Source of the DNA: Pecten maximus
Lineage: Eukaryota
Direction: 5' to 3'
Assembly (NCBI RefSeq): GCF_902652985.1
Contig: NC_047025.1
Location: 40,300,001-40,364,000, forward strand
Length of the DNA: 64,000 nucleotides
In this document: in pieces, positions 5,255 through 50,298 of the stretch
Position numbering within the stretch: position 1 is the first letter of the stretch
Layout: each line of letters opens with the position of its first letter
Notes under the pieces: model-generated
The model's database searches: none
What the model was told of the DNA's origin: nothing
Seen by the model: the letters and a program-made list of their open reading frames with translations, nothing else
Translations under genes and position numbers: made by a program

Positions 5255-8200
5255 TTATGAGGAGCTACTGAGCACCATTATGAGTCGCATGTTTATGGTT
5301 TTAGAAGCCAGCAGCTTGTTACACTCCATTGAGTTGTGTATCGGCAGATTATTATACTCTGTCTCTGGGTTTTCATTGGAAAACTCCTGACTGTACACAA
5401 CTGGGTTCATGAGCATCTCCCCGTATGGTCCCTTGAGAGCGATGAAGCTGACAGTGATTGGCTGGCTTGCCTTGCCCTTGAGGACCAGCTGATAAGACAT
5501 GCTCCGTTCAGTGGTCAATGCGGGATTCTTCTGGTCATTATTGATGCGGGCCTTGATCACCCACTGGTGATTAAATGCTGAGAAGCGACTCGTCTCGTAG
5601 AACAACTTTGTTATGAAGTCGTCAGTTCTGTATGGCTTCAGTTGTAGATCTACAAGGTAATAGATTTCATTATCTACAAGGTAATAGATTTCATTATCTA
5701 CAAGGTAATAGATTTCATTATCTACAAGGTAAAAGATTTCATTATCTACAAGGTAATAGATTTCATTATCTACAAGGTAATAGATTTCATTATCTACAAG
5801 GTAATAGATTTCATTATCTACAAGGTAATAGATTTCATTATCTACAAGGTAATAGATTTCATTATCTACAAGGTAATAGATTTCATTATCTACAAGATAA
5901 TAGATTTCATTATCTACAAGGTAATAGATTTCATTATCTACAAGGTAAAAGATTTCATTATCTACAAGGTAATAGATTTCATTATCAATTCATTGTGTTC
6001 AAAATTTACAGGTAGTAATCATTACATTTCTATTCCATCAAACAAGAAATTCTTCATCTTGTCCGACTCGTTAAGATTTGTTTTCAAATTATTTCATGAT
6101 GTTCTACCATTTTAACATCTATGGCAGTAATACGTTTGGTTTACCTGGTACATAATTTATTCTGTAAGGACTTCCAGGCTTGGTGTGTACCTACCATTGA
6201 AGGTAATCTTTTCACACGAGAGGAGAGAGAAGATCCTGCTGTAGAGCTGTGTCTCGTCCTTAACCTGCTGATCTATGCAGGCCACAGCCGCCATGATGTC
6301 GTCTCCTGACTTGTTGGGATGGTGACAGCCCTTCTCATGCTCTTTCAGCTCGTGATAGGGGCCTTTCCACGGACAACCGATGCGTGAGTATTTACATGTT
6401 GACAGCCTAGAAAATATGCAAATGGCAAATGTACCATCTTGTTGCGATTGCCACAAGAGCTGGACCTGCAAAAAAATTGTTTGTTTTGATTAGTGTACTT
6501 ACCTTTATATATCCGTGAAGCTAAAAAAAGGAATACAGAATGATAATATCCAAACAGCTGCATGACCTTGGCACGTTGTCACACACAGGTTTGTGTTAAT
6601 CCTCTTCTTAGTTGCATGTTTAGTGTTAACACACAGTTATTCTCATTGTAAATGGTGTTATTTAAAACCACCACATATTTTCCAGTATATGTATATATCC
6701 TGTTCAATGGAACACAGGGTGTGATAATTATACTGGTACAAACCAGTCTCCAGTAATCCAGTGTAGATAGTGCTAATTGTATGTACACCACTGCTTATCA
6801 CTACACGTATCCAGATTAATAAGCACCACATGTGGTGCCAGGATCAGATCCCCACTAGGACACACCAACACAAGGTTATCTCCACTAGGGGGGTAACACG
6901 TACAAGGTCAACTATAGGTCAGTTACCGTAACACACCTAATGATGATGTGTATACCACAACTCCAGTTCCAAATTCATGTAGTAACACATCATCAAATAT
7001 CGTAACGAGTTAGTGCAATGCTTTTCACAATCGTTTTAGTGTATCCATTTGATCTCTCAGTAAAAAGAGCACACCACTATAAGCTATCATATAAAATCCA
7101 CTTAATTTTCGACTGAAAACCTTTAAAATTCAACATTGGAAAAAACACAACAACACAGACAATGAAACACATCTTTATTTGTATTTTTTTCAAATCTCCA
7201 AGTTCATGAAACTCGCAGAACAAACATGAAATTATAACACCTGGACCAGAAAAATTATCTCCAAGTTAAACCAAAGGATGGTGTGCAGTCAAAATGTCAA
7301 TATTTGATAAGGCCAAAACTTTCGACTGGTCTGAATAAACCTGTACAATATTCATCAATTTGTTTTGTGAGCTTAAACTCACCATTTATTATACCATTTA
7401 TGCAGTTTTATACAGTTATCAGAAGTTCCAGTCCTTTTTAGATTGAAACACAAATGGCCAAACCAAATGGTTGAATTTGATAATCATCCATAATCCCTCT
7501 TAATAACTTTGAACTCTAAATATAGGAAATTTAGGAGGATCGAACAGAAAACTGACAAAAATATTGCATGCTACTTTTACTGCACCTTGAAAGATATGAA
7601 CATACTTGCCGCCTTCTGAAACATGTTTGTTGATTCAAGTCACTGTGGTCAACTTCTGAAATAGGCACTGACCCGCTGGTTGTAAAAGTGACCGTGATGA
7701 CACAACTCCATCGGTCCTGATCAGGAACAAAAGACAAAAGTGTGTTTCTAATTATTAAACATGTTAATCAACAACAAAGAAGAAAGCATCTGGACAGCTG
7801 GGCTGCCCCATCCCCTCCATACAGATGCTTTCTCCTTTGTGTCGGTCAATAGGTGAGTTAGAGAATAACGGTGTGTGTAGGTGTGTGTGGTAGAGATCTA
7901 ACTAAGCCTTAATTACGGAGGGCTTACCCAGACCACCCAATGCCTACCTCTCCTGACACAGCTCCCGCTCATGATGGTTGAGTAGATTACGTGGAAGCAG
8001 GCAGGCGCAGAACTGACAGGTACTGGGCAGCTCTGATACGGCTTTCTCTACAGCCAGGTTGCGGGTACAGGATGACTTGCTGATCTCACAGCGACAGTTG
8101 GGACATGTAGAGGTCTCGTCCTTCAGGCGTCCATCAGCAAGGAGATGGTTGAAACAACCAGCACACATCAGGTGGCCATTGGTACACTACAACACAAGTA

Positions 8201-10165: not shown

Positions 10166-10214
10166 CTCGTTTGTTTACGTTCTGCATTTGTTGACGTTTT
10201 CGGGGCTCACTCCA

Positions 10215-15630: not shown

Positions 15631-17660
15631 GTTCTATTTTACCTGTGACCTGAAAATTAAAATAGTTACAATAAAAAACATGAAGCAGAAAAACAATGTA
15701 GTTGCACATATATATACAAAATGTATACAGAAAGGAAAAAGAAACCCAGCTAGAAATTGTCCTGTGTAGGGGAAATAAGACATAATAGAATGTAATGATG
15801 GTTTGATTGAAAGATAATGAACTTCTGAACAAAAGATGACGGTTGTGAATAAGTGCCTGTTGTTTCATCATCCACCAGGGCATGCACATCACCTTGGACC
15901 TGCCGGGGTTTGTAGCCCTTAGAACCAAGGTTATGTTCCCTTGTCACTATAAAGGGTACCTTCCCCTATATCCCATCCTCACTAGTCAAGAGTCATGATC
16001 CTACTCCTCTTCAAAAGGCAGAATGTAGGAGTAGGTAGATCATAGAAGTAGGCAGATGTAAACCTTGGCTAGTGAAGATGCCTATGACCTAATTGATCCT
16101 TGCCAATAAATGTTCAAGGTATCCATTACTAGACAAGTTACAAGATAAAAATTAAATTCCATGCAGATTAAATTAAAAACCTGATGGAAGCATTGTATCA
16201 GCATACCCTGCTGGAGAGCAGCGTAGGCAGGGTATGAATATTTGTTCTAATACTAATACTGTAATGACCGACCAACCAGAGCATCCTCCTATAACTTCCA
16301 GTTCTCAATCTGTTCAAGAAGTTGTGCTTGCTGTTTTGTGATGTTTCAAGATTTGTTAATGAATGCAATTAATAGTTGCTGTGTTGTGCATTCACATGGA
16401 CTTGTTCAGGCGTTAACAAAATATCGTCAATCCCCCTCCCCCCTCCCCCCAAAGGTGGTAATATATATAATTTAAACCAGGAGGTCCATTGGAAAACGAC
16501 GATTGGAGAGCTTATGGACACCGATGGGATAATGCAAGTTCAAAACCCTGATCCCCGGAAGTATCATGCGAAGTACGTGCAATCCTAATTCCGTGTCCCT
16601 GAAATTGCATTTTTCGAAGACATTGATTGCAACTTTCATAATCAGAATCGAGCTGATTATCACCATGGTGGCAACACGCCATCTCCTCATTAACAATTCT
16701 ACAGGCAGCTTATAAATCAATAACTGGAGCTGTTCAGGACGATCATTTGTCGACTGCATGTCACAATAATAATAACATACCGTACGAGAGACGGTGACAT
16801 TGACTCGGCCTACGTGCTGCTGAGATATGGGTTTGCGATATTGTCATAAACTCCACAAAAGTCATCGCGTGTTGTGACGACAAAATATTTTGAAATATGA
16901 CCAAAGTCTGTTCCAACTTACCTGTATGAGACTGGACTGCACACCTCTCGCAGCAAAACGCGTCTAACACTACAAACATCAGTAGTACTACACGCTCGCA
17001 ATGAAGGTCAAAGGGCAGAGTTTACCTTGGCACACGATCTCTTTCCGGGCTGCAAAGGATTCGTAACGCAGAGATTTTTTGTCAAGCATTTTATTTATTG
17101 CCAAACCCTGTGACAATAACCCGCACAATCCCTATCAACTATAGAGATAATGATATATATATATTTATATAAATATTATAAATATAATTTACAATGCTTT
17201 GGGGGGGTGGGGGTGGGGGGTTGGGGTTGGTTTGGGGGGGGGGGGGGGGGGGGGTTTGGTAAAAACGAAAAAAGGGGTGGTGGGGTTTTAGAAATAAAGG
17301 ACTAAAATTTTGTTATTATGGGGGGGGGGGGGGGGGGGGGGGGGGATAAAATATTTGAATAAAAAAAACTGAAAAAAAAATTCTGGTGGGTGTTTTAGAA
17401 ATAAAGGACTGCGTGCGCTAGGATTTGATGCTTGTTTGATAAATGGGTTGGTATTGAAAATTTCATTTCCGACATAGTTCCGGATGCCTACTCCGCATAA
17501 TTATACAGATATCACATACAATATCTCAAATTTATCCAGTCTATTGTTAAATATTTTAATATTTGGAGCAGATACAATGTCTTCTGATGAGCGGTTCCAC
17601 ATTTTTTAAAGTTCTTATTGTGAAACTATTTTCTCTCCGGTTAATTTGTCCTGTGCTGTT

Positions 17661-17691
<31 letters not shown>

Positions 17692-22835: not shown

Positions 22836-22871
22836 AAGACTTGGCATTACACAGGAAAAAGTACAGTGACA

Positions 22872-29600: not shown

Positions 29601-32600
29601 GGACAGATTTTAGTCCTTACCTAGTACAGGTAAACAATCTACAGGGACAGATATTAGTCCTTACCTAGTACAGGTAGACAACGGACAGGGACAGATATTA
29701 GTTCTTACCTAGTACAGGTAAACAACTGACAGATATTAGTCCTTACCTAGTACATGTAAACAATCGACAGGGACAGATATTAGTCCTTACCTAGTACAGG
29801 TAAACAACTGACAGATATTAGTCCTTACCTAGTACAGGTAAACAATCGACAGGGACAGATATTAGTCCTTACCTAGTACAGGTAAACAATCGACAGGGAC
29901 AGATATTAGTCCTTACCTAGTACAGGTAAACAATCGACAGGGACAGATATTAGTCCTTACCTAGTACAGGTAAACAATGGACAGGGACAGATATTAGTCC
30001 TTACCTAGTACAGGTAAACAATCTACAGGGACAGATATTAGTCCTTACCTAGTACAGGTAAACAATCTACAGGGACAGATATTAGTCCTTACCTAGTACA
30101 GGTAAACGATCCACAGGGACAGATATTAGTCCTTACCTAGTACAGGTAAACAATCGACAGGGACAGATATTAGTCCTTACCTAGTACAGGTAAACAACTG
30201 ACAGAGACAGATATTAGTCCTTACCTAGTACAGGTAAACAATCTACAGAGACAGATATTAGTCCTTACCTTGTACAGGTAAACAATTTACAGGGACAGAT
30301 ATTAGTCCTTACCTAGTACAGGTAAACAACTGACAGAGACAGATATTAGTCCTTACCTAGTACAGGTAAACAACTGACAGGGACAGATATTAGTCCTTAC
30401 CTAGTACAGGTAAACAATCTACAGAGACAGATATTAGTCCTTACCTAGTACAGGTAAACAACGACAGGGACAGATATTAGTCCTTACCTAGTACAGGTAA
30501 ACAATCGACAGGGACAGATATTAGTCCTTACCTAGTACAGGTAAACAACTGACAGAGACAGATATTAGTCCTTACCTAGTACAGGTAAACAACTGACAGG
30601 GACAGATATTAGTCCTTACCTAGTACAGGTAAACAATCTACAGGGGCAGATATTAGTCCTTACCTAGTACAGGTAAACAATCGACAGGGACAGATATTAG
30701 TCCTTACCTAGTACAGGTAAACGATCCACAGGGACAGATATTAGTCCTTACCTAGTACAGGTAAACAATCGACAGGGACAGATATTAGTCCTTACCTAGT
30801 ACAGGTAAACAATCGACAGGGACAGATATTAGTCCTTACCTAGTACAGGTAAACAATCGACAGGGGCAGATATTAGTCCTTACCTAGTACAGGTAAACAA
30901 TCGACAGGGACAGATATTAGTCCTTACCTAGTACAGGTAAACAATCTACAGGGACAGATATCCCCTACTGTATATCAGTGTTTACCGTAAATCACATACC
31001 TTTTTCCCCTTCTGTATATCAGTGTTTACTGTAAATGACATACCTTTATTCGCTTCTGTATATCAATGTTTACCGTAAATCACATACCTTTATCCCCTTC
31101 TGTATATTCCAGTCCATACCCATGTGTCCTGGCAGTTTTTTGCCTGGCATAACTCGTGAATGTCCCTGTAGGTAATATAGACTCCGTAAACATGGATTTA
31201 TGTCTGTGTTTACTGGTACAGAACATTAACTTTATATACACAGAAACCAAGGTAGCATATACATCTGTACAGTCAAACAATCAAGCATTCAGGTTCCAGT
31301 TTGCCTGAGATTTTTTAACCATCTACATGTATTTACCAAATATTACCATTAGATTATCTATTAACAGCTTTGTAAGACCAGGGCTTTTTCTCATTGATTT
31401 GGGAAGGGACCTTTTTGTCTCATTTTGGGAAGAAAATTGATGAATTGGGAAAGATTTTTTCAGGAGAAAACTACAAATTTTGGGAATTTGGCTTAAATAT
31501 GAAATAATTTCAATTGGGAATGGGGCCCATTAACGGCCCCAAAAAGCCCCCAGAAAAAGCCCTGAAGACCACACAAAAATTCCCAAAACTGTCTTAAAAA
31601 CACAGCAAAATTTACCAATTTTGTGTCTCCAAAAATTATTTCCCGTACTTTTTGGTTGATTTTTTCAAGTACATGATGAGGGCCTGCATCGATCACCTGG
31701 ATATTTCAGTAATTATGTCAAAATACTTTATTTAAGTTATTTCAAATATTTTCCTACTTTCTTTTGAACTTTTATCTTCCAACAATAGTCCAAAACACAG
31801 TGGAACCAAATCCTGTCATTCGTGAAAAAGGATTTTAAAGTTGAATTTTTTTGGCTATATTTCCCTTATCAGGCCCTTTCCTCCTCCCCCATGAGTTCCA
31901 CTTACTTTGTTTTTACAACATTAAATCTCATTTGGCCAATAATGCTCCCGACCAAATTTCATTAAAAGTAATTCAGTTGTTCCGGACTATAAGGGATTTA
32001 AATGATTTTCCTCTATTTTCCCTAAGGCCCAAAGCTCCTCCCATCCCAAGGGAGCCACACCCTCCGTTTATACATAAGATCTCCTTTGCCCATTTATGCT
32101 CCTGACCAAATTTCATCAAAATTCATTCCATCATTCAGGACTAGTAGGGATTTAAAGGATTTACCTCAATTTCCCCTATTTGACCCTGCCCCTTTGGCCC
32201 CAATGGAGCCACCTCCTCTGTTTATATAACACTAGATCTACTTTGCCCACTTATGCTCCAGATCAAATTTCATCAAAATTCATTCGATCGTTCAGAACTA
32301 GTAGGGATTTAAAGGATTTACCTCAGTTTCCCCTATAAGGTCCTGCCCTTTGGTCCCAGGGGAGCCACATCATCTGTTGATACAACATTAGATCTCCTTT
32401 GCTATTTAATGCTACAGACAAAATTTTATCAAAATCCATTTAGGTAGGGATTTAAATCATTTACCTTGATTTCCCCTATTGGGCACTGACCCTCTGGCCC
32501 AAGGAGAGCCACACCCTCCGTTTATACAAAATTAGATCTCTTTTGCCCAATAATGCTCCAGACATTTAAGCGTTCAGGACTAGTAGGGATTTAAAGGAAA

Positions 32601-35600
32601 TGTTGATGGACAGCGGACGGATGCTGGACGGATGCTGGACGGACGCCACACCGTGGCATAAACTCACTGGTTCTTTGGACCAGGTGAGCTAAAGACATTA
32701 ATGTCGCTCAGCTTCCTGAAAGCTGTCACAACCAAAAATATATGGATCATTGGCATACTTTTTATTAAAGATAAATAGATAAGCATTTGTCTTCTTTAAA
32801 TCTTAAGCTGCCCTATGTCCTAAGTCATCAAAGTAACTTACCTGTTGTCCAATAGACCCAGTTCGTCGCATAGTCTTTGTGTTGCCATGGGTTTTCCTAC
32901 CCCCAGTAAACCCCCATCGTTTGATCACACCTTGGAAACCATGACCGATACTGAAAAAAGTAAAGTGACAAGTTTACGTACAAATTCCCTGCAAAAGTAC
33001 ATCACTGACTTACCCGTCTTATCACTAACCACCTGTTATGTCCCTTATCGCCCCCTTTTATCACTTACCTCCCCTGTTATATCACTTACCTCCCCTGTTA
33101 TATCACTTACCTCCCCTGTTATATCACTAACCTCCCCTGTTATATCACTTACCTCCCCTGTTATATCACTTATCTCCCCTGTTATATCACTTACCTCCCC
33201 TGTTATATCACTAACCTCCCCTGTTATATCACTTACCTCCCCTGTTATATCACTTACCTCCCTTGTTATATCACTTACCTTCCTTGTTATATCACTTACC
33301 TCCCCTGTTATATCACTTACCTCCCCTGTTATATCACTTACCTCCCCTGTTATATCACTTACCTCCCTTGTTATATCACTTACCTCCCCTGTTATATCAC
33401 TTACCTCCCCTGTTATATCACTAACCTCCCCTGTTATATCACTAACCTCCCCTGTTATATCACTTACCTCCCCTGTTATATCACTAACCTCCCCTGTTAT
33501 AACACTTACCTCCCCTGTTATATCACTTACCTCCCCTGTTATATCACTTACCTCCCCTGTTATATCACTTATCTCCCCTGTTATATCACTTATCTCCCCT
33601 GTTATATCACTTATCTCCCCTGTTATAACACTTACCTCCCTTGTTATATCACTTACCTCCCCTGTTATATCACTTACCTCCCCTGTTATATCACTTACCT
33701 CCCCTGTTATATCACTTATCTCCCCTGTTATATCACCTACCTCCCCTGTTATATCACTTACCTCCCCTGTTATATCACTTATCTCCCCTGTTATTTCACT
33801 TATCTCCCTTGTTATATTGCTTATCTCCCCTGTTATATCACTAACCTCCCCTGTTATAACACTTACCTCCCCTGTTATAACACTAACCTCCCCTGTTATA
33901 TCACTTATCTCCCCTGTTATTTCACTTATCTCCCTTGTTATATCACTTATCTCCCCTGTTATATCACTTACCTCCCCTGTTATATCACTTATCTCCCCTG
34001 TTATATCATCACTTACCTCCCCTGTTATATCACTTACCTCCTCTGTTATATCACTTACCTCCCTTGTTATATTGCTTATCTCCCCTGTTATATCACTTAT
34101 CTCCCTTGTTATATCACTTACCTCCCTTGTTATAACTTACCTCCCCTGTTATATCACTTATCTCTCCTGTTATAACACTTACCTCCCCTGTTATAACACT
34201 TACCTCCCCTGTTATATCACTTATCTCCCCTGTTATATCATCACTTACCTCCCCTGTTATATCACTTACCTCCCCTGTTATATCACTTACCTCCCTTGTT
34301 ATATTGCTTATCTCCCCTGTTATATCACTTATCTCCCTTGTTATATCACTTACCTCCCTTGTTATAACTTACCTCCCCTGTTATATCACTTATTTCTCCT
34401 GTTATAACACTTACCTCCCCTGTTATATCACTAACCTCCCCTGTTATAACACTTACCTCCCCTGTAATATCACCTATCTCCCCTGTTATATCACTTACCT
34501 CCCCTGTTATAACACTTATCTCCCCTGTTATAACACTTATCTCCCCTGTTATATCACTTACCTCCCGTTATATCACTTATCTCCCTTGTTACATTAAATT
34601 AAAATATCTACTGGCAGTGATTAATACTGTATTCTATTTTAGGTTATACGCATTATGAATGCCAACTGCATAACAGGAAAACAGTCCTTTACTATATACG
34701 AAAAAATAATAACAGAAAACTGAATAAAAACATATCTCAAAGATCTTTCAGGAATGTTGAATTGGCAGAACAGTCCATAGTACATGCTCACTTTTCGTGA
34801 AAACGTTCCATGTACTTTCTTCAGGAACAGAGACTTTGAAATACAATCAGATAACACCTTGTCTTCTTTTGCAATGAATTTGTTTAAAAGTGCTTTAACA
34901 CTGGGAATAATGGTCCTTATTATAAATAGCATTGTTTGTTTATTGTGTCATACTGTAGAGGCATGTCCATTGAATTTGAAAACTGATTAATTAATGCTGT
35001 CAGAAATAGGTCAGGGTTGTTTGTTGTAGAAACGGCTGCAATATAATGTGATGCTTGAGAAACCGAATGCATGCATGCTGTTGTTGGTCAACAACACTGT
35101 AAAGTATTTACATCGTCTTTCTCCAGTACATGTATGTTGTGACAATGTCTACATTATTTCAGACGATAGACATACTGAAACGATACTGCTCATTCTGATA
35201 GTCAAGAGAGCCCTACATAGCAGACAGTGAGTGAACAAAATCTTGTGCCTCTGTTGACGAAAATTTCTTGTGTAATATTCAAACAGATTTATTCAATTCT
35301 GTCCAAAAAACTGATACAATAAGGTTATTTATCAGCAATAAATAAAGCATTTACATCCATCTCAGGTTTGATTCATACTCATTTCAGTTCCTAGTCCTAC
35401 AACTGGAAAGAATTTACTACATTCATATAAACAGTGACAGTGGAAATCATTGGTAGATTATCACTTACGTCTTGGCTTGTACGTCCACATAGTCTCCCAC
35501 TCGGAAGTGCATTACAGATAATGGGGTGCCTGGAAACACAAAGTTTGATAAACAGTCATTGGTGTCTTATTTCATCGAGTATTAAATCACCAACTTATCC

Positions 35601-38600
35601 TAGAATATCCGACAAGATTTCCATGATCAGTAAGGAAGAAGGAAAAATTAAATGATTCAGTTCCTAACAAAGGTAGAAGTGATTTTTTGACTTTAGAAAT
35701 TCATTTGAATAATAAAGGGAATGTAGCAAGAGCTGATGTTTATATCTATGTTAACATCTGGTGAGGTGAGTATGTGAAAAATTTCATATGAGGCAGAAAT
35801 GGATACAAAACACCAATGATTTTCTACATGCTTTTTATCATTCTTATTGATTTAAAAAGTGAGAAAATCAACACAGATCATAAATATCAGCATCAAACGA
35901 ATCATGACTACCACAGTGGTAGTGTTGAGTTCATTAAACTGACTGTCAGTAATGACATCATCAGGTGTAACTTACCTGACTGTCAGTAATGACATCACCA
36001 GGTGTAACTTACCTGGCTGTCAGTAATGACATCACCAGGTGTAACTTACCTGGCTGTATTGCTGCATTTGGTGTAACTAAGAATCGTGTTAGTTTCCGCT
36101 TAGGTGGTACACCTGCTTCCAAAAATAGGTTGTTGTATTCTTTTCTGAACTGAAATAAGATGATAATAATACATGCACATCAGATGAGATATCCAGGAAA
36201 ACTAAATTAGTCAATTAATGTTTGATTTCTCATTGTCCTAAGTTAAAACCAATGTCTGGTTCAGCTATTGATCAAATTGGTTTCCATGGTTACAAGGTAT
36301 TTATATGATTCCTTGTTAGCTGTGTAAGTTACTCACTTGATGGGGATATGAGCTGAGAGCTCCGACAACAACCGATCCAAATCTGTTCCAGTATGGAGTA
36401 CTTCCTATGGATGTACTGAATTCTTCTGGTGGTATATATCGTATCACATGATTGTCAATTATCTACAAAGCAAAAACATTCCTCATTCAGCAATTTTTAC
36501 TTATTTTTTTCTCATTGAAGTTTCACTTTCTAAGAAGAGCTGCAGTAATTAAAGCAAAACATAGTTAACAGGGAAAAAAATGGAAAGTGAACCCTATAAC
36601 CCTATATAGCAGACACTGACCAATATATATATATTATGCAACAATATATGGTCAGGAACACGCTGTTAAGTATGATCAAAAGAGACAATAGTTGTTAAAG
36701 TTTCAAATAATAGACTTATCTGATAATTAACAAGATTGATGAAAATATATCTTTAGTAACAGTGGCCCCAATTTTGATCCCATGCATGTGAAACATGAAC
36801 TTGTACAAGAGATGACGGCTGTAAGTGTATAAAGTCTCAGGGCAATCAGGTAATTAAAGAGGTCCGTTAGACTTCAATAATGTATTTATAGATGACCTCA
36901 TTTTGTATCCTAGGTGGTTGAAATGCCAGCTCATATACCATGAAAAAGAGTCCCTTAGCTATTAGAGGATTACAGTGATGTTAGAGGATTACACAGTGAT
37001 TTTAGAGGATTACACAGTGAGAAATCGAGGCCTTGATACCTCTAACTTCCCATGTCAGATTCAGACTTTGTAGTCTGTCTGAAATTAAAAACAAAAACTA
37101 TTGATATTAACCAATATATCCTTCCACCCAGATCACAGTGTGTAAATAATCAGATCAGAGACCTTTGATGCCTTAGCATGCTGTGCAAAGTAACCACAAT
37201 TAATATCTCATGACCCTAGTTTCATTAAGTTTCACATTATGATTCTGAAACTAGATAATCTCTAGAAGATTTTGTGCAGAAACAGTTCAGAAAAAAAAAT
37301 ATATATAGACAGGAAAATGTCTTATGCGTCAGATGAGCTAATATACGTCTTACATGTGAGTTCAAAGTTATGATAAACAACTGACCTGGTACAATGTCAC
37401 ATCCATTTTCTCGCCATTTTTCTTCCACTGTGCCATACCTCCAATCTTTAAAGCTAAAACACCTGTTCTCCGTGTACTAGAAAAAAAAATCATATAATTG
37501 GTTCTGTTTATCGAAAGACATAATATGCAAATTCATTTAACAGGCCTGTTAATTAATTATTTATACAGTTTGAAGGTCATGCTTTTTAATAGGCAAACTA
37601 CAGTCTCAATCTCATAAGACTTATTTTTTTTAAAATAATTTTAACAAATCATATAGATTATATTATGAGTACTGTGCCTTACGTTTTGTTCCATTCTCCT
37701 CTTGGCCAGATGTCTTCCTTGAGAGGACTTGGAACATTCTTAAACTTGTTTTCGGCTAGTTCCTTGAGGAACTCTCTGTTCTCCCATGTCAGCTGTTCAG
37801 GTGATACATTTGTTTTCTTCTTGACGTGCCAACCTGGTGGGGCACTGGTACGTTTCCTCTCCCGAACTGGTTGGTAACAGGTCAGTATCCTATTGTAAAA
37901 TAAACAATAGATACTTGACCACATTTTTCACTTAAAAAACTTACAAAAGAGAAGTACAATTGTAACAACACAAAAGATTTTATAATGCCATTCAGTTTTG
38001 TTTCCAATGCTAATTCCTAGGCAGCTCTGCAATTCCTAGGCAGCTCTGCAAGCCAAGTGCAAAGTTTCAAGGAAAATGTGTTCTTTTCTGTCAATGAGCA
38101 TGGACGTAAGTTGGCAACGGACACTAAACCACTGTATACTGTATATGTCGGTAGGGTTTGGCATCTGAGAAAATTGACAAAGTGCAAGATATAAAGGCTT
38201 GCGGTTCATTTTTTTTAAAAACATTTCTTTTCAGATCTCAAAGAACTACTGACCAAAGCAAAACTTTTTTTCTTCATATGAAGTCTTAAAAAAAAATAAC
38301 ATTACTCTTGTTATGCCCGCTGAAGTATAAATTATAAAGTTCGCAGCAAGTTTTATGTGTCTATCTTGCGCGCATGCAATGTCATCCGGAAAATGTTGTT
38401 TTCGTCAGTTTGGTATAGCAATAAATAGCTATTATAGCGACTTATACCTGTACTAGCGATACATTATCATATGCCCGACCTGAAGGGCACTTGTCACATT
38501 GAAGCTAGAGAACGAGCGATTACATTTGTAAATGCGGAAACATGCTAAATAACTATATTTAACGATGCGTTGATCCAGTTGATACATTACCTGGATGTTG

Positions 38601-38911: not shown

Positions 38912-41900
38912 ATGAGCCAGCAGCAATTTTCACGTTTAAAAGAAGAACAAGAGAAAGCAATACAAGAAACAAACATCAAACTAGAGAAATGGTGATATGC
39001 TTTTCTATGCCGTGTTTCATATTAGATGTCAAAGGGTAAAATTGCCTGAACTGGTTGGCGTTACTCCAACAATGTTAGAGGTTTTACACGGCGAGATACT
39101 TTTGACAGGCGCGTCGCAGTCGGCAAAATAATATCCGATAGAAAAAGAGCCGACCAGTGGCCTCTTATGTTATAGGAGTATGGTTGGCGTCAGAACAAAA
39201 AAAAAAATAATAAAAATAGCCAGACATTTTACTACCTTTAGCTAGCTGAAGTATGGGAGACAATGAGACAGATCAGTTGAAAGATATGCCAGGTGTATTT
39301 AGGGGTTACATATGTATATTAGGCCAACGTATTTCAATAAAATCCTGGAATACATCGTACATTTGTAATAAGCAGCTCGGGTAGCACGGGTTTCCTCTGG
39401 CCCTGACACCATGTCTGGTGTAGGGCCACAACGCACTAGTGACTACTATACGAAAAAGTGGAATTCTCCGACACCGTTTGGTGTTGCTAAGATTTTGGTG
39501 CGAACAGAATAAAATCAAGCGCGACATAACACCTACCTTACATATATGGATAAATCAAAATTTATTTACCCCAAAACGTCCATTTTGTCCCCGATTTGTT
39601 TTCTATTCTGTCAGTGTATCATACACCTACCAACCATAAGTCTCGCTTTTTGTCACATATATCTTTTCTTGCAGAAATGCTTCAATTTGCTACTGTTTTT
39701 ATAGCTATATAGAGCTATCATAGTTCAATACCACTAATAGTGAAATCAGGACTTCTCCCCGGCCTGATAAGAGGAAGAAATGAGACGACCAGACCAGGAT
39801 TCCAACCAGGGACCTCCAAACTCTAAAAGACACACAAGAAATTTACCTACTTGGTGATCTAGTGATACAGGAGTCTATACACCATCAATGCATACATCTA
39901 AGGGAAGAATAATATTTTACATACTGTAAAAGAAAATCTAAACTTTATTTACAGCAATCGCCACACAATTTATATCAATTTATATTAATCACAGTTGGTT
40001 GCAGCTATTTGGAAAGGAGGGAAGAAGATTATATAATCTGATAGATAATCTTCAGTGATATTCCATTTTATAACATTCTTTATTAATGAACTAGGCATGG
40101 TGCAATATAATAAACGAGAACATGTACATGTAATTTCCTTTGTAATATCTGCTATGTGTTGTACCCAGGACCTTGGTTTTACTTGTCTGACACTGTTACA
40201 TTTAAATGAGTAAAAAAGAAATTCTTCTCAGCAAGTTAAATATTTATTCACCATGACGCTGTACATTACAGTTACCACATAACCTGTTATATATATATAT
40301 GGTTACTATTGGTTTACTATTACATATAGAATATATATCTTAAACATAGTGATAAAACACATTTAGCCATGGAAGTTGTTATTATTGCATGATTTGGGCA
40401 GGACTTTTAACATTTTTAACACTGTCTAACACTGCCTGTTATAGCTGTGAAAAAAACCCCAGTAAATTAAGATTGTATATCTTTTGCAGGGAACAATTTA
40501 GATCAGACTATGTTGCATTGAAAACCAGACTTAAAACTCTTCCCGACAAGGTCTCGCATGATGTAATGGTGAGTACAGTTGTAAACTGATACAGTTCTAT
40601 TAGAATGGTCTAGTGATTGAACCAGTATTATTGGGTTTGATTTCCATTTCAGAGACAATTTTATCCCTTCTACCATGTATAATTATCTTTATGATCATCA
40701 GCTGTTGTAGTGTTTCTAGGGTGATTCAGATTTCCGTTTACTGTGAGCGTAAGATGTTAAAATTTTACTTACTCTAAATAAATTGAGAGTTATAACATAT
40801 AGCCAGTACCCATATTCAATATTGATAAGATTTTGTGGTATCACACAAAGTATATGGAGTTCTAGCTGTCATAGTATGTTACAATGCGTGGTTACATTCA
40901 TCTATCTTCAAGTTCCAAATGGGAATTTCTCTTTTCAAAAATGGCAGACATTGACAATTCAATGATGATCGTTTTTCTGTGAAATGGTATGATTTACTCA
41001 ACGCCAAAGGCTGCATGAATTATACAGGTTTTAACTGTTAGTTTAAGGAAATGACTGTCACAGTTGTCAAAATGTTTTCTTCTGAAAAACTGAAAGTATA
41101 CTTTCCTATTAATTGATCCTTAGCATGTAAATATGTGACTTAGCATGTTGACATATAGAGTAATACAAGTTTTGCAAAAAGAACTATAACACAATATTCG
41201 AGGTCACTAACACAAGTATAAATGGTAAAATATTTTCTTCTGAAAAACAAAAAATGACTAACACTATCTTGCCAGAAGAACTTTGCAAAATAAATACCTC
41301 TGAAACAAGTGAGGGTCTTCAGGCTCCTTAGTATGAAAGATATTAGTGATAACAGCAGTGTAAGTCCAGATTTGATTTCATCATCACTTAATGCACCATC
41401 ATATATGAATAAAGCATGTTACACATCTATGTCATTTCAGGTTCCATTTGGTTCGTTGGCGTTCATGCCAGGAAAGTTGGTACATACCAATGAAGTATTA
41501 GTGTTGCTAGGTGATAACTGGTTTGCCGAACGTTCTGCCAAACAGGCAGCTGCTATTGTAGACCGCCGTCTGAAAGGTAGGCACATCATAATATCTATTT
41601 CATAACGTTTGATATCCTGATCCTAGTGTTCAAGGTAGACATATATCTGTCTCTGTTTGATATCCTGGTCCTAGTGTTCAAGGTAGACATATATCTGTCT
41701 CTGTTTGATATCCTAGTGTTAAAGGTAGACATATATCTGTCTCTGTTTGATATCCTAGTGTTAAAGGTAGACATATATCTGTCCCTGTTTGATATCCTAG
41801 TGTTAAAGGTAGACATATATCTGTCCCTGTTTGATATCCTAGTGTTAAAGGTAGACATATATCTGTCTCTGTTTGATATCCTGGTCCTAGTGTTGAAGGT

Positions 41901-44900
41901 AGACATATATCTGTCTCTGTTTGATATCCTAGTGTTAAAGGTAGACATATATCTGTCTCTGTTTGATATCCTAGTGTTAAAGGTAGACATATCTCTGTCT
42001 CTGTTTGATATCCTGGTCCTAGTGTTAAAGGTAGACATATATCTGTCTCTGTTTGATATCCTAGTGTTAAAGGTAGACATATCTCTGTCTCTGTTTGATA
42101 TCCTAGTGTTAAAGGTAGACATATATCTGTCTCTGTTTGATATCCTAGTGTTAAAGGTAGACATATATCTGTCTCTGTTTGATATCCTAGTGTTAAAGGT
42201 AGACATATATCTGTCTCTGTTTGATATCCTAGTGTTAAAGGTAGACATATATCTGTCTCTGTTTGATATCCTAGTGTTAAAGGTAGACATATATCTGTCT
42301 CTGTTTGATATCCTGGTGTTAAAGGTAGACATATATCTGTCTCTGTTTGATATCCTAGTGTTAAAGGTAGACATATATCTGTCTCTGTTTGATATCCTAG
42401 TGTTAAAGGTAGACATATATCTGTCTCTGTTTGATATCCTAGTGTTAAAGGTAGACATATATCTGTCTCTGTTTGATATCCTAGTGTTAAAGGTAGACAT
42501 ATCTCTGTCTCTGTTTGATATCCTAGTGTTAAAGGTAGACATATATCTGTCTCTGTTTGATATCCTGGTCCTAGTGTTAAAGGTAGACATATATCTGTCT
42601 CTGTTTGATATCCTGGTCCTAGTGTTGAAGGTAGACATATATCTGTCTCTGTTTGATATCCTGGTCCTAGTGTTAAAGGTAGACATATATCTGTCTCTGT
42701 TTGATATCCTAGTGTTAAAGGTAGACATATATATGCGTCTCTGTTTGATATCCTAGTGTTAAAGGTAGACATATATCTGTCTCTGTTTGATATCCTAGTG
42801 TTAAAGGTAGACATATCTCTGTCTCTGTTTGATATCCTAGTGTTAAAGGTAGACATATATCTGTCTCTGTTTGATATCCTAGTGTTAAAGGTAGACACAT
42901 ATCTGTCTCTGTTTGATATCCTAGTGTTAAAGGTAGACATATATCTGTCTCTGTTTGATATCCTGGCGTTAAAGGTAGACATATATCTGTCTCTGTTTGA
43001 TTGTCTGATCCTAGTGTTAAAGGTAGACATATATCTGTCCCTGTTTGATATCCTAGTGTTAAAGGTAGACATATATCTGTCTCTGTTTGATATCCTGGCG
43101 TTAAAGGTAGACATATATCTGTCTCTGTTTGATTGTCTGATCCTAGTGTTAAAGGTAGACATATATCTGTCTCTGTTTGATATCCTAGTGTTAAAGGTAG
43201 ACATATATCTGTCTCTGTTTGATTGTCTGATCCTAGTGTTAAGGTTGTAAATGATTTCTTAAACCCTTTGATATGACAATTTATTTTGTATCAGATTTGA
43301 TAGTATGTACTCAATTACAACACATGGCACAGTAATTAATTAGATTAACTTCATCACACATTTTATGTAAATATATGACTTACCTGTATTAATGTTTCAG
43401 ATGTTGAGTCTCAGATAGAAGGACTGAAGGAGCAGAAAAAGATATTGTCACCAAGGCTAGAATTTACATCAGATCTCGCAGAGGTAGTCAAATATTTATT
43501 GATAGATCTAACAAAAAGTGTGATATCAAAGATGTAAGCTACATGTATTTACCTGATTGAATCATTTTACTTCAAACTTAAAGAACATATATTGGCCAGT
43601 GTTTTACAGTTAAGTATGATAGTAACATCCAGTTAACTGTGATATGATGGTCGGGTTCTATTTTACATATATCAAGCTGCCCAGAAGTGCTATCTGTCTA
43701 CAGTAATTTTGTAACAATATTTCTTTGTTGTCCACAGGAACGTGGTGTTGTGGACATTACAGAGGAATATGATGAGGAGAAAGAAAAAGTCTGGAAAGGT
43801 GAGTCCTGAAATGAACTTATAGTCATCGGAGAAACTCTGATTAGGTGAGTCCTGAAGTGAACTTAAAGTCATCGGAGAAACTCGGATTAGGTGAGTCCTG
43901 AACCAAGCTTATAGTCATCGGAGAAACTCGGATTAGGTGAGTCCTGAAGTGAACTTATAGTCATCGGAGAAACTCGGATTAGGTGAGTCCTGAAATGAAC
44001 TTATAGTCATCGGAGAAACTCAGATTAGGTGAGTCCTGAAATGAACTTATAGTCATCGGAGAAACTCGGATTAGGTGAGTCCTGAAGTGAACTTATAGTC
44101 ATCGGAGAAACTCGGATTAGGTGAGTCCTGAACCAAGCTTATAGTCATCGGAGAAACTCGGATTAGGTGAGGCCTGAAGTGAACTTATAGTCATCGGAGA
44201 AACTCTGGAAAAAGTATGCCCTGAGAGAAACTGTGGAAAGGTGAGTCCTGAACCAAGCTTATACAATGTAGTCATCGGAGAAATTGATTACGTGAGTCTT
44301 GAAGCGAGCTTATAGTCATCCGAGAAAATCTGGAAAGGTGAGTCTCGAACCAAGCTTATAGTCATCAAAAAAAATCTGGAAAGATGAGTCCTGAAGCGAG
44401 CTTATTGTCATTGGAGAAACTCCAGCAAGATCTGTCCTGAGAGAAATTCTGGAAAGATGGGTCCTGAAAAAAGTCCTATCATAAGCTTATATTGATCAGA
44501 TAAGGAATGCAAAGGTGATTCCTCAGTGAAACTATTTATTAAGTTTTCGATGGACATTTCTCAAATTTCATTTCTTGTATCCCTTTGTCCTTAGTTGTGC
44601 ATGTTCAATTTTGGGCTTATGCCACGGCGCGGCGTCTGTCTGTCAATATGTCCGATATGGGAAAAAGAGGTTAGTCCTTTAAATCGTAACTAGTCATATA
44701 ATTATGAATGGATTTGAACCAAATTTGGTCCAGAACATCTTTGGGGGAACAGAGTTTGGGAACATGAGCGATGCAGGCCATCTTGGCCTCTTGTTTTGTT
44801 TTTTTTTGACAATTGGGGTACAGATATTAGGCACAATAGTGTAACTTACACTTCAGTTACAGACTTATGTCAATTGTTAGGCACACATGGATACTTAGGA

Positions 44901-47900
44901 ACAGTTGTGTGAAATAAAACTAGAACAATTCTAATTTTAGAACAACACAAGAAAAGGGTCCAGGAAATGAACAAAAAGAAAATATCCAGAAAAGATGGCG
45001 GATCAGAAGACAAGTCACAAGGTCGGGAAAAAGCAATGACTGACGAGCAGCTGTGGGCGAGGCTGGACGAACTTGAGAGGATTGAGAAAGAAGGGAATGA
45101 GTTACTAAAGTAATGTTGATTTAAAGTAATGTTGATTTAAAAGTAAGGTTGATTTAAAGTAATGTTGATTTAAAAGTAAGGTTGATTTAAAGTGATGTTG
45201 ATTTAAAAGTAAGGTTGATTTAAAGTAATGTTAATTTAAAAGTAATGTTGATTTAAAAGTAAGGTTGATTTATAAGTAAGGTTGATTTAAAAGTGATGTT
45301 GATTTAAAAGTAATGTTGATTTAAAAGTAAGGTTGATTTAAAAGTAAGATTGATTTAAAAGTAAGGTTGATTTATAAGTAAGGTTGATTTAAAAGTGATG
45401 TTGATTTAAAAGTAAGGTTAACTTAAAAATAAGGTTGATTTAAAAGTAAGGTTGACTTAAAAGTAATGTTAATTTAAAAGTAATGTTGATTTAAAGTAAT
45501 GTTAATTTAAAGTAATGTTGATTTAAAAGAGATGTTGATTTAAAAGTAAGGTTGATTTAAAAGTAAGGTTGATTTATAAGTAAGGTTGATTTAAAGTGAT
45601 GTTGATTTAAAGTAATGTTGATTTAAAGTAATGTTAATCTAAAAGTAAGGTTGATTTAAAAGTGATGTTGATTTAAAGTAAGGTTGATTTAAAGTCATGT
45701 TGATTTAAAGTAATGTTGATTTAAAAGTAATGTTAATTTAAAAGTAATGTTGATTTAAAGTAATGTTAATTTAAAAGTAAGGTTGATTTAAAAGTAAGGT
45801 TGATTTAAAAGTAAGGTTGATTTAAAAGTGATGTTGATTTAAAAGTAATGTTGATTTAAAAGTAATATTGACTTAAAAGTAAGGTTGATTTAAAGTAATG
45901 TTAATTTAAAAGTAAGGTTGATTTAAAAGTAAGGTCGATTTAAAAGTAAGGTTGAATTAAAAGTAAGGTTGATTTAAAGTCATGTTGATTTAAAGTAAGG
46001 TTGATTTAAAAGTAATGTTGACTTAAAAGTAAGGTTATTTAAAAGTAAGGTTGATTTAAAGTGATGTTGATTTAAAGTAATGTTGATTTAAAGTAATGTT
46101 AATCTAAAAGTAAGGTTGATTTAAAAGTGATGTTGATTTAAAGTAAGGTTGATTTAAAGTAATGTTGATTTAAAGTAATGTTGATTTAAAAGTAATGTTA
46201 ATTTAAAAGTAATGTTGATTTAAAGTAATGTTAATTTAAAAGTAAGGTTGATTTAAAAAGTAAGGTTGATTTAAAAGTGATGTTGATTTAAAAGTAAGGT
46301 TGATTTAAAGTAATGTTAATTTAAAAGTAAGGTTGAATTAAAAGTAAGGTTGATTTAAAGTAATGTTAATTTAAAAGTAAGGTTGATTTAAAAGTAAGGT
46401 CGATTTAAAAGTAAGGTTGAATTAAAAGTAAGGTTGATTTAAAGTCATGTTGATTTAAAGTAAGGTTGATTTAAAAGTAATGTTGACTTAAAAGTAAGGT
46501 TGATTTAAAAGTAAGGTTGATTTAAAGTAATGTTGATTTAAAAGTAAGGTTGATTTAAAGTAATGTTGATTTAATGTAAGGTTGATTTAAAAGTAAGGTT
46601 GATTTAAAGTGATGATGATTTAAAGTAATGTTGATTTAAAGTAATGTTAATTTAAAAGTAAGGTTGATTTAAATTAATGTTAATTTAAAAGTAAGGTTGA
46701 TTTAAAAGTAAGGTTGATTTAAAAGTAAGGTTGATTTAAAAGTGATGTTGATTTAAAAGTAATGTTGATTTAAAAGTAATATTGACTTAAAAGTAAGGTT
46801 GATTTAAAGTAATGTTAATTTAAAAGTAAGGTTGATTTAAAAGTAAGGTCGATTTAAAAGTAAGGTTGAATTAAAAGTAAGGTTGATTTAAAGTCATGTT
46901 GATTTAAAGTAAGGTTGATTTAAAAGTAATGTTGACTTAAAAGTAAGGTTGATTTAAAAGTAAGGTTGATTTAAAGTAATGTTGATTTAAAAGTAAGGTT
47001 GATTTAAAGTAATGTTGATTTAATGTAAGGTTGATTTAAAAGTAAGGTTGATTTAAAGTGATGATGATTTAAAGTAATGTTGATTTAAAGTAATGTTAAT
47101 TTAAAAGTAAGGTTGATTCAAATTAATGTTAATTTAAAAGTAAGGTTGATTTAAAAGTAAGGTTGACTTAAAAGTAAGGTTGATTTAAAGTCATGTTGAT
47201 TTAAAGTAAGGTTGATTTAAAAGTAATGTTGACTTAAAAGTAATGTTGATTTAAAAGTAAGGTTGACTTAAAAGTAAGGTTGATTTAAAGTCATGTTGAT
47301 TTAAAGTAAGGTTGATTTATAAGTAATGTTGACTTAAAAGTAAGGTTGATTTAAAAGTAAGGTTGATTTAAAGTGATGTTGATTTAAAGTAATGTTGATT
47401 TAAAGTAATGTTAATTTAAAAGTAAGGTTGATTTATAAGTAATGTTGAATTTAAAAGTAATGTTGATTTAAAGTAATGTTGATTTATAACCACTCCTAAC
47501 CATTTAACCACAGGATTTGAATGACTATTGTATTGCAGTCTCATTGTGACATTGTTACTTACAGGCATGATAGATGTGTTAAAACTCTCAGTCTGTAGTT
47601 AAATTGTGTAACATAGGTTTTTTTCTGACACATGTTGCTAGCAGTCTTGATAGCTCTGTCATACACTCTTAAGATATATTTTATTGAATGGATTCTCTTT
47701 TTTAGGTTGGATATGGAAGATGAGATCAAACTCTCTCTACCTCCCCAAAGTGATGAAGATGAAGAAGAATTTGAGGAAGATGAGGAAGATGAGGATGATG
47801 AGAGTTTGTTATCAGAGGGCAGTGAACTTGAGGATTCTTCACGGATAACCTTCACACACACCAAGGTCATAACTCTAGGAGTGCTTGTTTGTTTGTTTGT

Positions 47901-50298
47901 TTATGTTTTAACGGCCCATCGACAACTAGGGTCATTTAGGGCCAAACAATATACTATCATTTTTTATTTTGAACGTTAAAATCAGATAAAAATTGTCATT
48001 TTTAAAAGCATTCGTATTGTATATTTAGATCATTATGATAAAAAAGTTGGTTAAAAATGGTAAAATATATATATGTACGAATAGATTATGTGAACTTTGT
48101 GATATAAATAGAACGTCAAAGAGAGTAATGTAAAAGACATCAAAGTCTATAAAATAGATCGATTTCTTTCAAGTAGCTAAATATTGTTTTCGAATCCACG
48201 GAACTGAAAAGGGTTTTCATATCCGGGACTCGAAAGTATTTATCATGAATGTGCTTGAAATCGGAACATTCTATTAAAAAATGCTCCACTGTGAATTGAG
48301 CATCACATGCATAACACACCGGTGGATCCTCTCGTTTCAAAAGGAACGAATGAGTAGGATATGTGTGCCCGGTACGGAGCCGAGAGAGGACTATTTCCTC
48401 TCTACGATCCTTCCGACTCGAGGAGTGCTTAAAAAATTAATTTTAGTCTAAAGAGTGATGGCTAACCCTAACTTTTCATCTCATGATTAGGATAAATTTG
48501 ATCCTGACTGCTTTTAAAGTGCAGCACCATTTAGTGATGATTTGAACATAATACATGTACATTTGTCTACTATTTTGTTTCTATACAAGAGTTATTGCCC
48601 TTTATATACAAAATGGATTCAACCCTTAGTTTGATACATCTTACCTGTACCACCATAAACCAATACTTCTAAAGCTGCCTTCTTTTGAAGAAATTTGGTG
48701 TGTGATGTAACTCACACTCATAACATCAACTCTATTTTGTACTTCATTGAATGAATGTCACTTACTAACATTAACTAATTACTGCATTACTCCATTCTTA
48801 ATTAACATCAACTAATTACTGCATTACTCCATTCTTAATTAACATCAACTAATTACAGCATTACTCCATTCTTAATTAACATCAACTAATTACTGCATTA
48901 CTCCATTCTTAATTAACATTAACTAATTACTGCATTACTCCATTCTTAATTAACATCAACTAATTACTGCATTACTCCATTCTTAATTAACATCAAGTAA
49001 TTACTGCATTACTCCATTCTTAATTAACATCAACTAATTACTGCATTACTCCATTCTTAATTAACATTAACTTATTACTGCATTACTCCATTCTTATTGT
49101 TTACAAACACTTTATAATGGTAGCTTATTAACAAAATATTGTTTATCATCTTTGATATTTAGGTGGATGACACAGAAGAAAAAGAAAACTCTGGTAAAAT
49201 TGAAAGCCCAAGAGACATTTACCGACAGTTCTGTGAAGTAAAACCAAAATCTATAATGAAATCAAATACAGATAATGAAGGGCAGAAAGCAAAGGTGAAG
49301 AAAAAAGTAAAAATGAAAGAAAATGTCTCAGCTGAAGAGAACAGAAAAAAGCGAGGAATCGGCCAAGGTCCTTTGGTGAGTTTATAAAGGTCAAGGTCCT
49401 TTGGTGAGTTTATAAAGGTCAAGGTCCTTTGGTGAGTTTATAAAGGTCAAGGTCCTTTGGGGAGTTTATAAAGGTCAAGGTCATTTGGTGAGTTTATAAA
49501 GGTCAAGGTCATTTGGTGAGTTTATAAAGGTCAAGGTCCTTTGGTGAGTTTATAAAGGTCAAGGTCATTTGGTGAGTTTATAAATGTCAAGGTCCTTTGG
49601 TCCTTTGGTGAGTTTATAAAGGCCAATGTCCTTTGGTGAGTTTATAAAGGTCAATGTCATTTGGTGAGTTTATAAAGGTCAAGGTCATTTGGTGAGTTTA
49701 TAAAGGTGAAGGTCATTTGGTGAGTTTATAAAGGTCAAGGACCTTTGGCAAGTTTATGAAGGTGCTTAATTGGATTTGTAGATGTTTTGTGAGTTTGAAA
49801 CAACAAAGTTGTTGGTAATGGTCATTGTAGCATCTGTGTATTGGTCATAATTTTGTACATTAGATAGCTGAGTATCTTTGTCAGGCAGTGATTTGAGAGT
49901 GGAGTTATTATTGGGGTTGAATACTGAATACTAATATAAATAGGTACATGTACATTTCTAGGTCAGATAGTCTCTATGGTGCTGTTGACTCTACTTATAT
50001 CTCATTAGTGTATGACTTGTTCATATTTTAGACTGATGTTTTTCTTTTCTTTCAGGCATTTTCTGGTACAGTCATTGAGAAGAATCAAGATTCTTTAATA
50101 AAAACATTTGAGGACAGAAATTCTGATGAAACTGTCAAAACTGGAGAAATAAACAGCATGAGTAATTTAACCAGGCACCATACAGACCGAGCAGAAACAA
50201 GTGTAAAACAGACAGGAGGGAGTGTGAAGGACAGTACACAGCCGAGACGTGTGTCTAAGTTTAAGGCAGGGAGACAGCGTAACACGGATCCTTCATAA
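38912..50298 (+). CDS. URI1: Unconventional prefoldin RPB5 interactor 1, 407 aa, 9 exons
   Basis: Exons 38912-38991, 40490-40568, 41441-41576, 43401-43483, 43738-43798, 44941-45109, 47706-47865, 49163-49375, 50056-50298; total 1224 nt. Prefoldin segment VMVPFGSLAFMPGKLVHTNEVLVLLGDNWFAERSAKQA, LWARLDELE, acidic tract, KPKSIMK, AFSGTVIEK, C-terminal RVSKFKAGR. Confidence 0.95.
41570..43243 (+). repeat. 42-bp (48-bp variant) minisatellite, ~38 copies, following the URI1 exon 3 donor
   Basis: agtgttaaag|GTAGACatatatctgtctctgtttgatatcct versus authentic tgaaag|GTAGGCacatcataatatct. Confidence 0.93.
43790..44470 (+). repeat. 46-bp repeat (9 regular copies plus degenerate ones) starting at the URI1 exon 5 donor
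   Basis: GTGAGTcctgaagtgaacttatagtcatcggagaaactcggattAG at 46-nt spacing from 43799. Confidence 0.93.
44480..44795 (+). mobile_element. HINE-like fragment
   Basis: gggcttatgccacggcgcggcgtctgtctgtc and 3' end atgagcgatgcaggccatcttggcctcttgtt. Confidence 0.55.
45107..47490 (+). repeat. 16/17-bp minisatellite, ~145 copies, starting at the URI1 exon 6 donor
   Basis: aaa|GTAATGttgattt and aaaa|GTAAGGttgattt. Confidence 0.95.
47887..48420 (-). mobile_element. 5'-truncated I/Nimb-group LINE with 10-bp TSD
   Basis: RREEIVLSRLRTGHTYPTHSFLLKREDPPVCYACDAQFTVEHFLIEC (C-terminal CCHC knuckle); (AAAC)n tail; TSD aggagtgctt at 47877-47886 and 48421-48430. Confidence 0.88.
48762..49097 (+). repeat. 37-bp minisatellite, ~9 copies, just upstream of the URI1 exon 8 acceptor
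   Basis: taacatcaactaattactgcattactccattcttaat. Confidence 0.92.
49364..49765 (+). repeat. 28-bp repeat, ~14 copies, reiterating the URI1 exon 8 donor junction
   Basis: caaggtcctttg|GTGAGTttataaaggt (12 exonic plus 16 intronic nt). Confidence 0.95.

Follow-up and report, generated by a model that had tools for sequence, protein, structure and literature searches.

The question raised by this locus is how introns come to be filled with reiterated copies of their own splice sites. The window analysed here, a stretch of 64,000 nucleotides (nt) of the scallop Pecten maximus (contig NC_047025.1, positions 40,300,001 to 40,364,000; window coordinates below count from its first base), contains three adjacent housekeeping genes, ZFTRAF1, MRPL3 and URI1, which between them bear seven tandem arrays situated on exon-intron junctions. 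The analysis of these arrays points to their membership in a repeat type known from a few genes of other animals, and counts of tandemly repeated splice-site words across the whole assembly reveal that donor sites, i.e. 5' splice sites, are over-represented in the tandem repeats of this genome.

All seven junction arrays pointed out in an initial annotation of the window were recovered by Tandem Repeats Finder (TRF), with which tandem arrays were called, and each of them was found to lie on a real junction; the program also reports many additional arrays in the window. The seven are organized head-to-tail, with periods of 17-46 base pairs (bp) and 3.2-143 copies by the TRF count, and in each case the junction has been copied into the intron such that every unit combines exonic bases with the splice site. 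The exonic contribution, given as 2-20 nt in the annotation, was confirmed by measurement: it amounts to 2 bases in ZFTRAF1, 8 and 20 bases at exons 5 and 8 of MRPL3, and at least 3, 2, 3 and 12 bases at exons 3, 5, 6 and 8 of URI1, respectively. In the affected introns, arrays account for 21-98% of the sequence. In the donor arrays the decoy sites are mostly intact and spaced at unit length, and in four of the five arrays examined for decay the junction-proximal copies are the cleanest, with the end lying in the intron interior being decayed. The first monomer (or the last one) spans the real exon-intron boundary, as indicated by RNA joints, by continuity with the mitochondrial ribosomal protein uL3m and by ZFTRAF1 homologues. 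The underlying gene models were obtained by searching exons one by one and checking exon phases by arithmetic. Pfam matches of single exons were used for gene identity only, and the continuity of the MRPL3 junctions was taken from PDB chain numbering. In total 17 introns were definable in the three genes; hence, of the earlier estimate that seven of about 24 introns are affected, the seven arrays stand but the denominator is reduced to 17-19.

In the case of URI1, assembled RNA contigs from three independent studies were placed on positions 43730-49729, and the joints 43798|44941, 45109|47706 and 47865|49163 are present in the contigs of all three (here and below the vertical bar marks a splice junction). 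The contigs place exon 8 at 49163-49376 and then continue into sequence beyond the examined stretch; because the next exon starts with a G, the GT of the exon 8 donor is placed at 49376-49377. These joints therefore identify the donor used at exons 5, 6 and 8 as the one in the initial 46-, 17- and 28-bp unit, respectively, with the remaining repeats being intronic. No joint from a later donor copy was seen at these three exons in the RNA contigs, which may miss rare decoy use. Contigs of a second organism also fall within the array at exon 5 and span the donor of exon 6.

The four URI1 arrays differ considerably in the relationship between the authentic donor and its decoys. At exon 3, the exon with the Prefoldin match, a diverged first unit of 58 bp begins at the donor and is followed by 42/48-bp units, each with AAGGTAGAC; TRF itself reports 37 copies of 42 bp at 41620-43223, starting 43 bp past the donor. 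All 37 decoys (AAGGTAGAC) of this array, which constitutes 88% of its intron, are weaker than the authentic donor (AAGGTAGGC). At exon 5 the TRF call covers 43797-44205 (8.9 copies of 46 bp), diverged copies extend further into the intron, and 8-9 decoys are present. The exon 6 array makes up 92% of its intron, and its authentic donor AAA|GTAATG is weak (3.5 bits), such that approximately 129 of the approximately 130 decoys score equal or higher. At exon 8 there are 11 identical decoys (TTGGTGAGT). A contrast case is provided by the 37-bp array of URI1 intron 7, an ordinary intronic array whose unit contains no splice motif.

The exon ends and phases of MRPL3 are coherent, and their numbering is continuous with human uL3m (chain 3j7y_E). 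The end of exon 5 corresponds to residue 189, the split codon to residue 190 and the start of exon 6 to residue 191, while the end of exon 8 corresponds to residue 272 and the start of exon 9 to residue 273. The first-copy donors are therefore authentic at both exons; a transcript spliced at the second-copy donor would be 37 or 44 nt longer and out of frame. The unit of the exon 5 array carries CAG|GTAAGT, with two decoys that are the same as the real donor, and that of the exon 8 array carries AAG|GTATGT, likewise with two identical decoys. Behind the latter lies a second array of 44-bp units, each with a strong sense-strand donor (TAGGTAAGG); the possibility that it is an older copy of the 44-bp junction unit was considered and rejected, as their similarity is not above that of shuffles. 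Together with the 35-bp array these make up 98% of MRPL3 intron 8 (4213 nt), stretching from the donor up to a point about 45 nt short of the acceptor. The 35-bp array and the 37-bp array of URI1 intron 7 were also considered as acceptor copies and rejected as such, since they merely approach to within about 45-66 nt of acceptors. In MRPL3 intron 6, the 21-bp array has the unit GAGGTAAGTGATA, which shares 12 of 13 bases with the donor of exon 6, GACGTAAGTGATA; between the array and that donor lies an interspersed repeat that has at least 47 relatives in the genome. The array is possibly a displaced junction array.

The ZFTRAF1 array differs from the others in being built on an acceptor. Its unit repeats ...CCTTGTAG|AT, and the array is in frame and free of stops. 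The peptide TFN|DLQLKPY spans the junction in full-length homologues and in evidently mRNA-derived proteins of relatives, and the last of the 14 acceptor copies (exon start 5649) is therefore the authentic one. In both MRPL3 and ZFTRAF1, splicing at a different copy would lead to a frameshift or to extra residues that the homologues lack. In the genomic reading frame of a relative (76% identical) the ZFTRAF1 intron occupies the same position, with unique sequence and no array before the acceptor. A perfect 14-nt palindrome (TTGTAGATCTACAA) at 5641-5654 is centred on the scallop acceptor junction where the 24-bp array ends, and might have favoured the first duplication there.

Genes, junction arrays and other tandem arrays of the window (positions from the first base of the window; copy numbers of junction arrays by TRF unless remarked)
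Feature	Position	Strand	Unit (bp)	Copies	Remarks
ZFTRAF1 last-acceptor array	5648..5986	-	24	14.1	98% matches
MRPL3 exon 8 donor array	30959..31107	-	44	3.4	exon 31088-31165
MRPL3 exon 5 donor array	35939..36057	-	37	3.2	exon 36050-36149
URI1 exon 3 donor array	41577..43223	+	42/48	38	copies counted from the donor; exon 41441-41576
URI1 exon 5 donor array	43797..44468	+	46	9	plus diverged distal copies; exon 43738-43798
URI1 exon 6 donor array	45107..47486	+	16/17	143	TRF unit 17; exon 44941-45109
URI1 exon 8 donor array	49364..49763	+	28	14	exon 49163-49375
35-bp array	26961..28446	-	35	42	MRPL3 intron 8; degenerate copies to ~45 nt before exon 9 acceptor
Array behind exon 8 junction array	28463..30961	-	44	58	MRPL3 intron 8
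21-bp array	33032..34591	-	21	74	MRPL3 intron 6
Ordinary intronic array	48766..49096	+	37	9	URI1 intron 7; 66 nt before exon 8 acceptor
ZFTRAF1	between 5258 and 10174	-			four coding exons; identity from ZFTRAF1 homologues
ZFTRAF1 last coding exon	5258..5649	-			start 5649 fixed by homologues
MRPL3	exons 37889 down to 26632	-			identity from Pfam Ribosomal_L3 and PDB uL3m matches
URI1	exons ~40500 to 50295	+			identity from Pfam Prefoldin match

Taken together, array structure, boundary span and site use, each of which was tested, identify the seven arrays with high confidence as junction-spanning ('mirage') minisatellites. The name comes from amphioxus Adh3, whose boundary-spanning tandem repeats are reported to be unstable in length (Canestro et al. 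2002); mirages were later found in the globins BflGb6/BflGb9, troponin C (TnC) and PGBD5, with no sign of aberrant mRNAs, and it was proposed that introns might be gained by way of them. As in the scallop, the amphioxus repeats span the exon-intron boundary and reiterate the AG/GT signals in the intron. Their units measure 10-160 bp, the repeats occur at 5' as well as 3' boundaries and leave normal splicing undisturbed, and the edge copies diverge with the inner copies being homogenised. The scallop arrays differ in their mollusc host, in a strong dominance of donors, and in reaching up to 145 copies and up to 98% of an intron; furthermore, a controlled genome-wide excess is shown for the scallop, whereas the amphioxus papers only suggest 'a more general phenomenon'. 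Human junction-spanning minisatellites are likewise known from F7 IVS7 (37 bp), CBS IVS13 (31 bp), IFI6/6-16 (25 pseudo-sites), LMNB2 (100 bp, most of an intron) and PDGF (81 bp), and thus the supposition that such repeats were undescribed does not hold. As in the scallop, the first monomer of the human cases consists of the last few exon bases and the donor (4 exon bases and 33 intron bases in F7). Fifty F7 constructs showed an oriented 5'-to-3' scanning in which the most upstream donor is chosen even where the decoys are identical or stronger; identical human decoys are thus silent, and the scallop RNA likewise shows the first donor. The puzzle posed in the initial annotation, of how the spliceosome picks one site among about 145 decoys, accordingly has a known answer, namely the most upstream donor, which is common to the F7 experiments and the three RNA sets. 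In the case of CBS and IFI6, splicing also occurs at the first two decoys, whereas no such use was seen in the scallop contigs, which could miss it. The human cases are isolated, in contrast to the seven arrays in three adjacent scallop genes and the thousands of candidates across the genome.

Two other classifications were rejected. The Rogers model, in which introns are gained by tandem duplication across an AGGT proto-splice site, shares with the scallop arrays the elementary event of a tandem duplication that includes AG|GT, but there a new intron arises within an exon, whereas the arrays sit in existing introns and merely enlarge them. The arrays are unlike intron gain because their introns pre-exist: the acceptors of the affected introns are of unique sequence with no relation to the array units, and in the relative the ZFTRAF1 intron exists but lacks an array. 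A dispersed transposon-borne satellite is contradicted by the presence of the local exon end in each unit and by the unrelated units of the genome-wide donor arrays listed. The URI1/MRPL3/ZFTRAF1 cluster is hence a new and unusually dense mollusc instance of a known repeat type.

Two checks within the window bear on whether arrays and junctions are associated. The 17 defined introns contain 14 arrays, and when each was placed randomly in its own intron, with an overhang of 20 nt allowed, 1.02 overlaps with a junction were expected against the six observed (exact P = 1.4e-4). Strong donors lie on the sense strand in seven window arrays and on the antisense strand in one, and junction arrays on donors outnumber those on acceptors by 6 to 1. 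Both the junction proximity and the sense-strand bias anticipated in the annotation are thus borne out at the level of the window.

For a view of the entire assembly (918 Mb, 19 chromosomes), triple tandem occurrences of a motif were counted on both strands with gaps of 9-38 (8-37 for a 9-mer), and the same pattern read backwards served as control; these are counts of sequence patterns wherever they lie in the genome. The consensus donor AGGTAAGT returned 9653 matches against 915 backwards, the perfect 9-mer CAGGTAAGT returned 3939 against 147, and a second donor class, AGGTGAGT, returned 5893 against 2205. A scrambled word, GATGAGTA, gave 1919 matches (backwards 1365), and a version with GT swapped to TG, AGTGAAGT, gave 2812 (backwards 2099), such that the 9653 matches of the consensus donor compare with 915-2812 across five controls of the same composition. 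The acceptor-like motif TTTTCAGG showed no tandem excess genome-wide (277 vs 424). On chromosome 1, the donor arrays among the matches listed have unrelated units and are about four times as frequent per megabase as those of the control words. A C at position -3, which was left unspecified in the first pattern, is found in 41% of the triplets, the background being 0.18. Outside arrays, 190 kb of sampled sequence contains 14 instances of AGGTAAGT and 12 of its mirror (the mean of 560 permutations of the same composition being 6.9); the donor word thus exceeds its mirror 10.5-fold within arrays and 1.2-fold outside them. Because it is no commoner than its mirror outside arrays, uniform seeding, which predicts at most a 1- to 2-fold excess, fails to explain the observed 5- to 27-fold excess. 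A donor-specific bias in tandem arrays is real across the genome, and no earlier description of such a controlled genome-wide donor excess was found in the literature searched. The interpretation offered in the initial annotation consequently survives in part: the arrays are true copies of junctions and are enriched there, and the bias is genome-wide and specific to donors, the acceptor-like motif being without excess. R-loops, Pol II pausing and nucleosome edges, which the annotation put forward as causes, are putative.

These observations can be accommodated in a stepwise scheme. The founding event was a tandem duplication of a 17-46 bp stretch straddling an exon-intron boundary, as attested by the 2-20 exonic bases that the units hold along with the splice site. 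Slippage or unequal exchange, the ordinary behaviour of minisatellites, would then raise the copy number to 3-145 and the share of the introns concerned to 21-98%. The mRNA is not altered: of all the donors it is the most upstream one that the spliceosome uses, and later copies stay intronic, as is seen from RNA for three URI1 arrays and from protein continuity for MRPL3. Acceptor copies, being upstream of the real acceptor, would compete with it and be purged, and this would account for both the 6:1 donor to acceptor ratio and the absence of a genome-wide acceptor excess; the in-frame and stop-free state of the sole acceptor array fits such purging. Lastly, given that the donor excess goes beyond uniform seeding, some process would promote the origin or expansion of arrays at 5' splice sites. 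Our best guess at its cause is that, in germline-expressed genes, mutation is biased by transcription or splicing, because tolerance alone cannot raise donor arrays above neutral arrays. In its broadest form the proposal is that the 5' splice sites of the scallop lineage are a transcription- or splicing-coupled hot spot (e.g. through polymerase pausing or R-loops) for the birth or growth of minisatellites, which would have seeded some thousand or more arrays for AGGTAAGT alone and would be a main driver of intron expansion; the arrays, every unit of which restores an AG|GT junction, might also be excised step by step through recursive splicing. This reading we advance tentatively, giving it somewhat less than an even chance.

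Several observations weigh against the stepwise scheme. A systematic random sample of 19 stretches of 10 kb (190 kb, a size at which a class of a few percent would escape detection) contained no junction array. Strong donors were found in two of the 36 sampled units, which is no excess over the 2.07 found in shuffles, and both of the donor-bearing arrays lacked an open frame upstream. Junction arrays are therefore a minority of the minisatellites of this genome, the window is an outlier, and the notion of junctions as a pervasive source of minisatellites is not supported. Moreover, the P-value obtained in the window is not decisive alone, because the test was post hoc and uncorrected for the 784 noted windows of the genome, and some of the genome-wide donor arrays may be intronic arrays that merely contain a donor-like word. 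About 23% of the sampled bases lie in tandem arrays, mostly with 14-60-bp units, and some of these exceed 5 kb (e.g. positions 1-7865 and 4618-10000 of two of the 10-kb stretches). For an animal genome, such a load of minisatellites is very high. It might be argued from these same figures that the adjacency is due to chance: with nearly a quarter of random DNA in arrays whose units show no donor excess, some arrays would abut exons accidentally, and among 784 windows screened, six overlaps against one expected would not be very improbable in some window, the striking one having been picked. Such an explanation does not, however, provide for units in which the final 2-20 bases of the exon are repeated in register with its real donor, and it is largely refuted by the pattern counts, in which tandem consensus donors are 5-27 times as frequent as controls at an equal single-copy frequency; we consider it very improbable.

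The remaining alternatives offer other origins for the pattern. Duplication might be uniform and selection alone responsible, with downstream donor copies being silent and acceptor or other signal-bearing repeats being purged. The dominance of the upstream donor, experimental in human F7 and seen here too, is in keeping with this, as are the lack of an acceptor-like excess, the in-frame and stop-free condition of the sole acceptor array, and the uniformly weaker decoys of URI1 exon 3. Yet tolerance could let donor arrays equal the frequency of neutral arrays but never exceed it, and the 10.5-fold excess of AGGTAAGT over its mirror in arrays, as opposed to 1.2-fold outside, renders this explanation unlikely. 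The main alternative is a U1-dependent effect on array growth or tolerance, in which the donor-like sequence itself, rather than the junction, matters: array RNA that binds the U1 small nuclear ribonucleoprotein (snRNP) would expand more readily, through U1- or R-loop-linked instability, or would be better tolerated, through protection of long introns from premature cleavage and polyadenylation, and the arrays need not start at exons. The large arrays at 28463-30961 and 33032-34591, with strong sense-strand donors and now off-junction, would be explained in this manner, and the perfect U1 complement CAGGTAAGT has the largest excess of all, 27-fold. Nevertheless, all seven arrays can be shown to start or finish on real junctions and to hold exonic bases in their units, the largest of them, with 17-bp units, has a weak donor (3.5 bits), and the 41% share of C at position -3 approximates that of real donors rather than surpassing it; we therefore rate a U1-dependent origin as decidedly unlikely. 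An RNA-mediated route, in which a small circular or lariat intron RNA undergoes rolling-circle reverse transcription and then integrates at the junction, finds its sole support in units that start near the 5' end of the intron. An excised intron would not supply the 8, 12 and up to 20 exonic bases that units carry, the ZFTRAF1 array is built on an acceptor, and units of 17-46 bp are much shorter than any intron, so that the rolling-circle copying entertained in the initial annotation is disfavoured and we give it next to no credence. A mutational bias at 5' splice sites linked to transcription or splicing thus remains our best guess.

Certain other features of the locus deserve mention. MRPL3 and URI1 are divergently oriented, on the minus and plus strands respectively, with the first exons of both within about 2.5 kb (37889-40571), and the region between them is probably a shared bidirectional promoter region. 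Within URI1, the acidic GAA/GAT-rich stretch of exon 7 (47751-47802) displays in-frame 9-nt deletions at two sites (47772 and 47788) that differ between RNA data sets, and these are a length polymorphism of the acidic tract. The summed word depth of RNA contigs over 44530-44929 in intron 5 reaches about 55,000 in one run, which suggests a repeated element of great abundance, or one that is highly expressed, within this intron. A retroelement tail occupies 48143-48436 in intron 7 and is well covered by contigs from all four RNA runs. Directly downstream of URI1, on the minus strand, cyclin-box-like open frames are found at 62975-63801, which we take to be cyclin E; URI1 and CCNE1 are neighbours in the human genome, and cyclin E beside URI1 here would then mean a conserved linkage. 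Decayed retroelement frames are present between 16000 and 22000, including a reverse-transcriptase-like one at 18867-19629 and an integrase-like one at 21386-21727, and poly-G occurs in two uninterrupted runs (26 bases at 17320-17345, 27 bases at 17661-17687) that lie 340 bp apart.

Junction-spanning repeats have until now been treated as a curiosity of single genes, and the controlled genome-wide count shows that donors, unlike acceptor-like or scrambled words, are strongly over-represented in tandem form. Two questions thereby become testable in one organism, namely whether tandem duplication is biased by splice sites or transcription and how far such arrays contribute to the growth of introns. 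The arrays also provide natural test cases for 5' splice-site choice, such as that of a weak authentic donor followed by some 129 decoys of equal or higher score.

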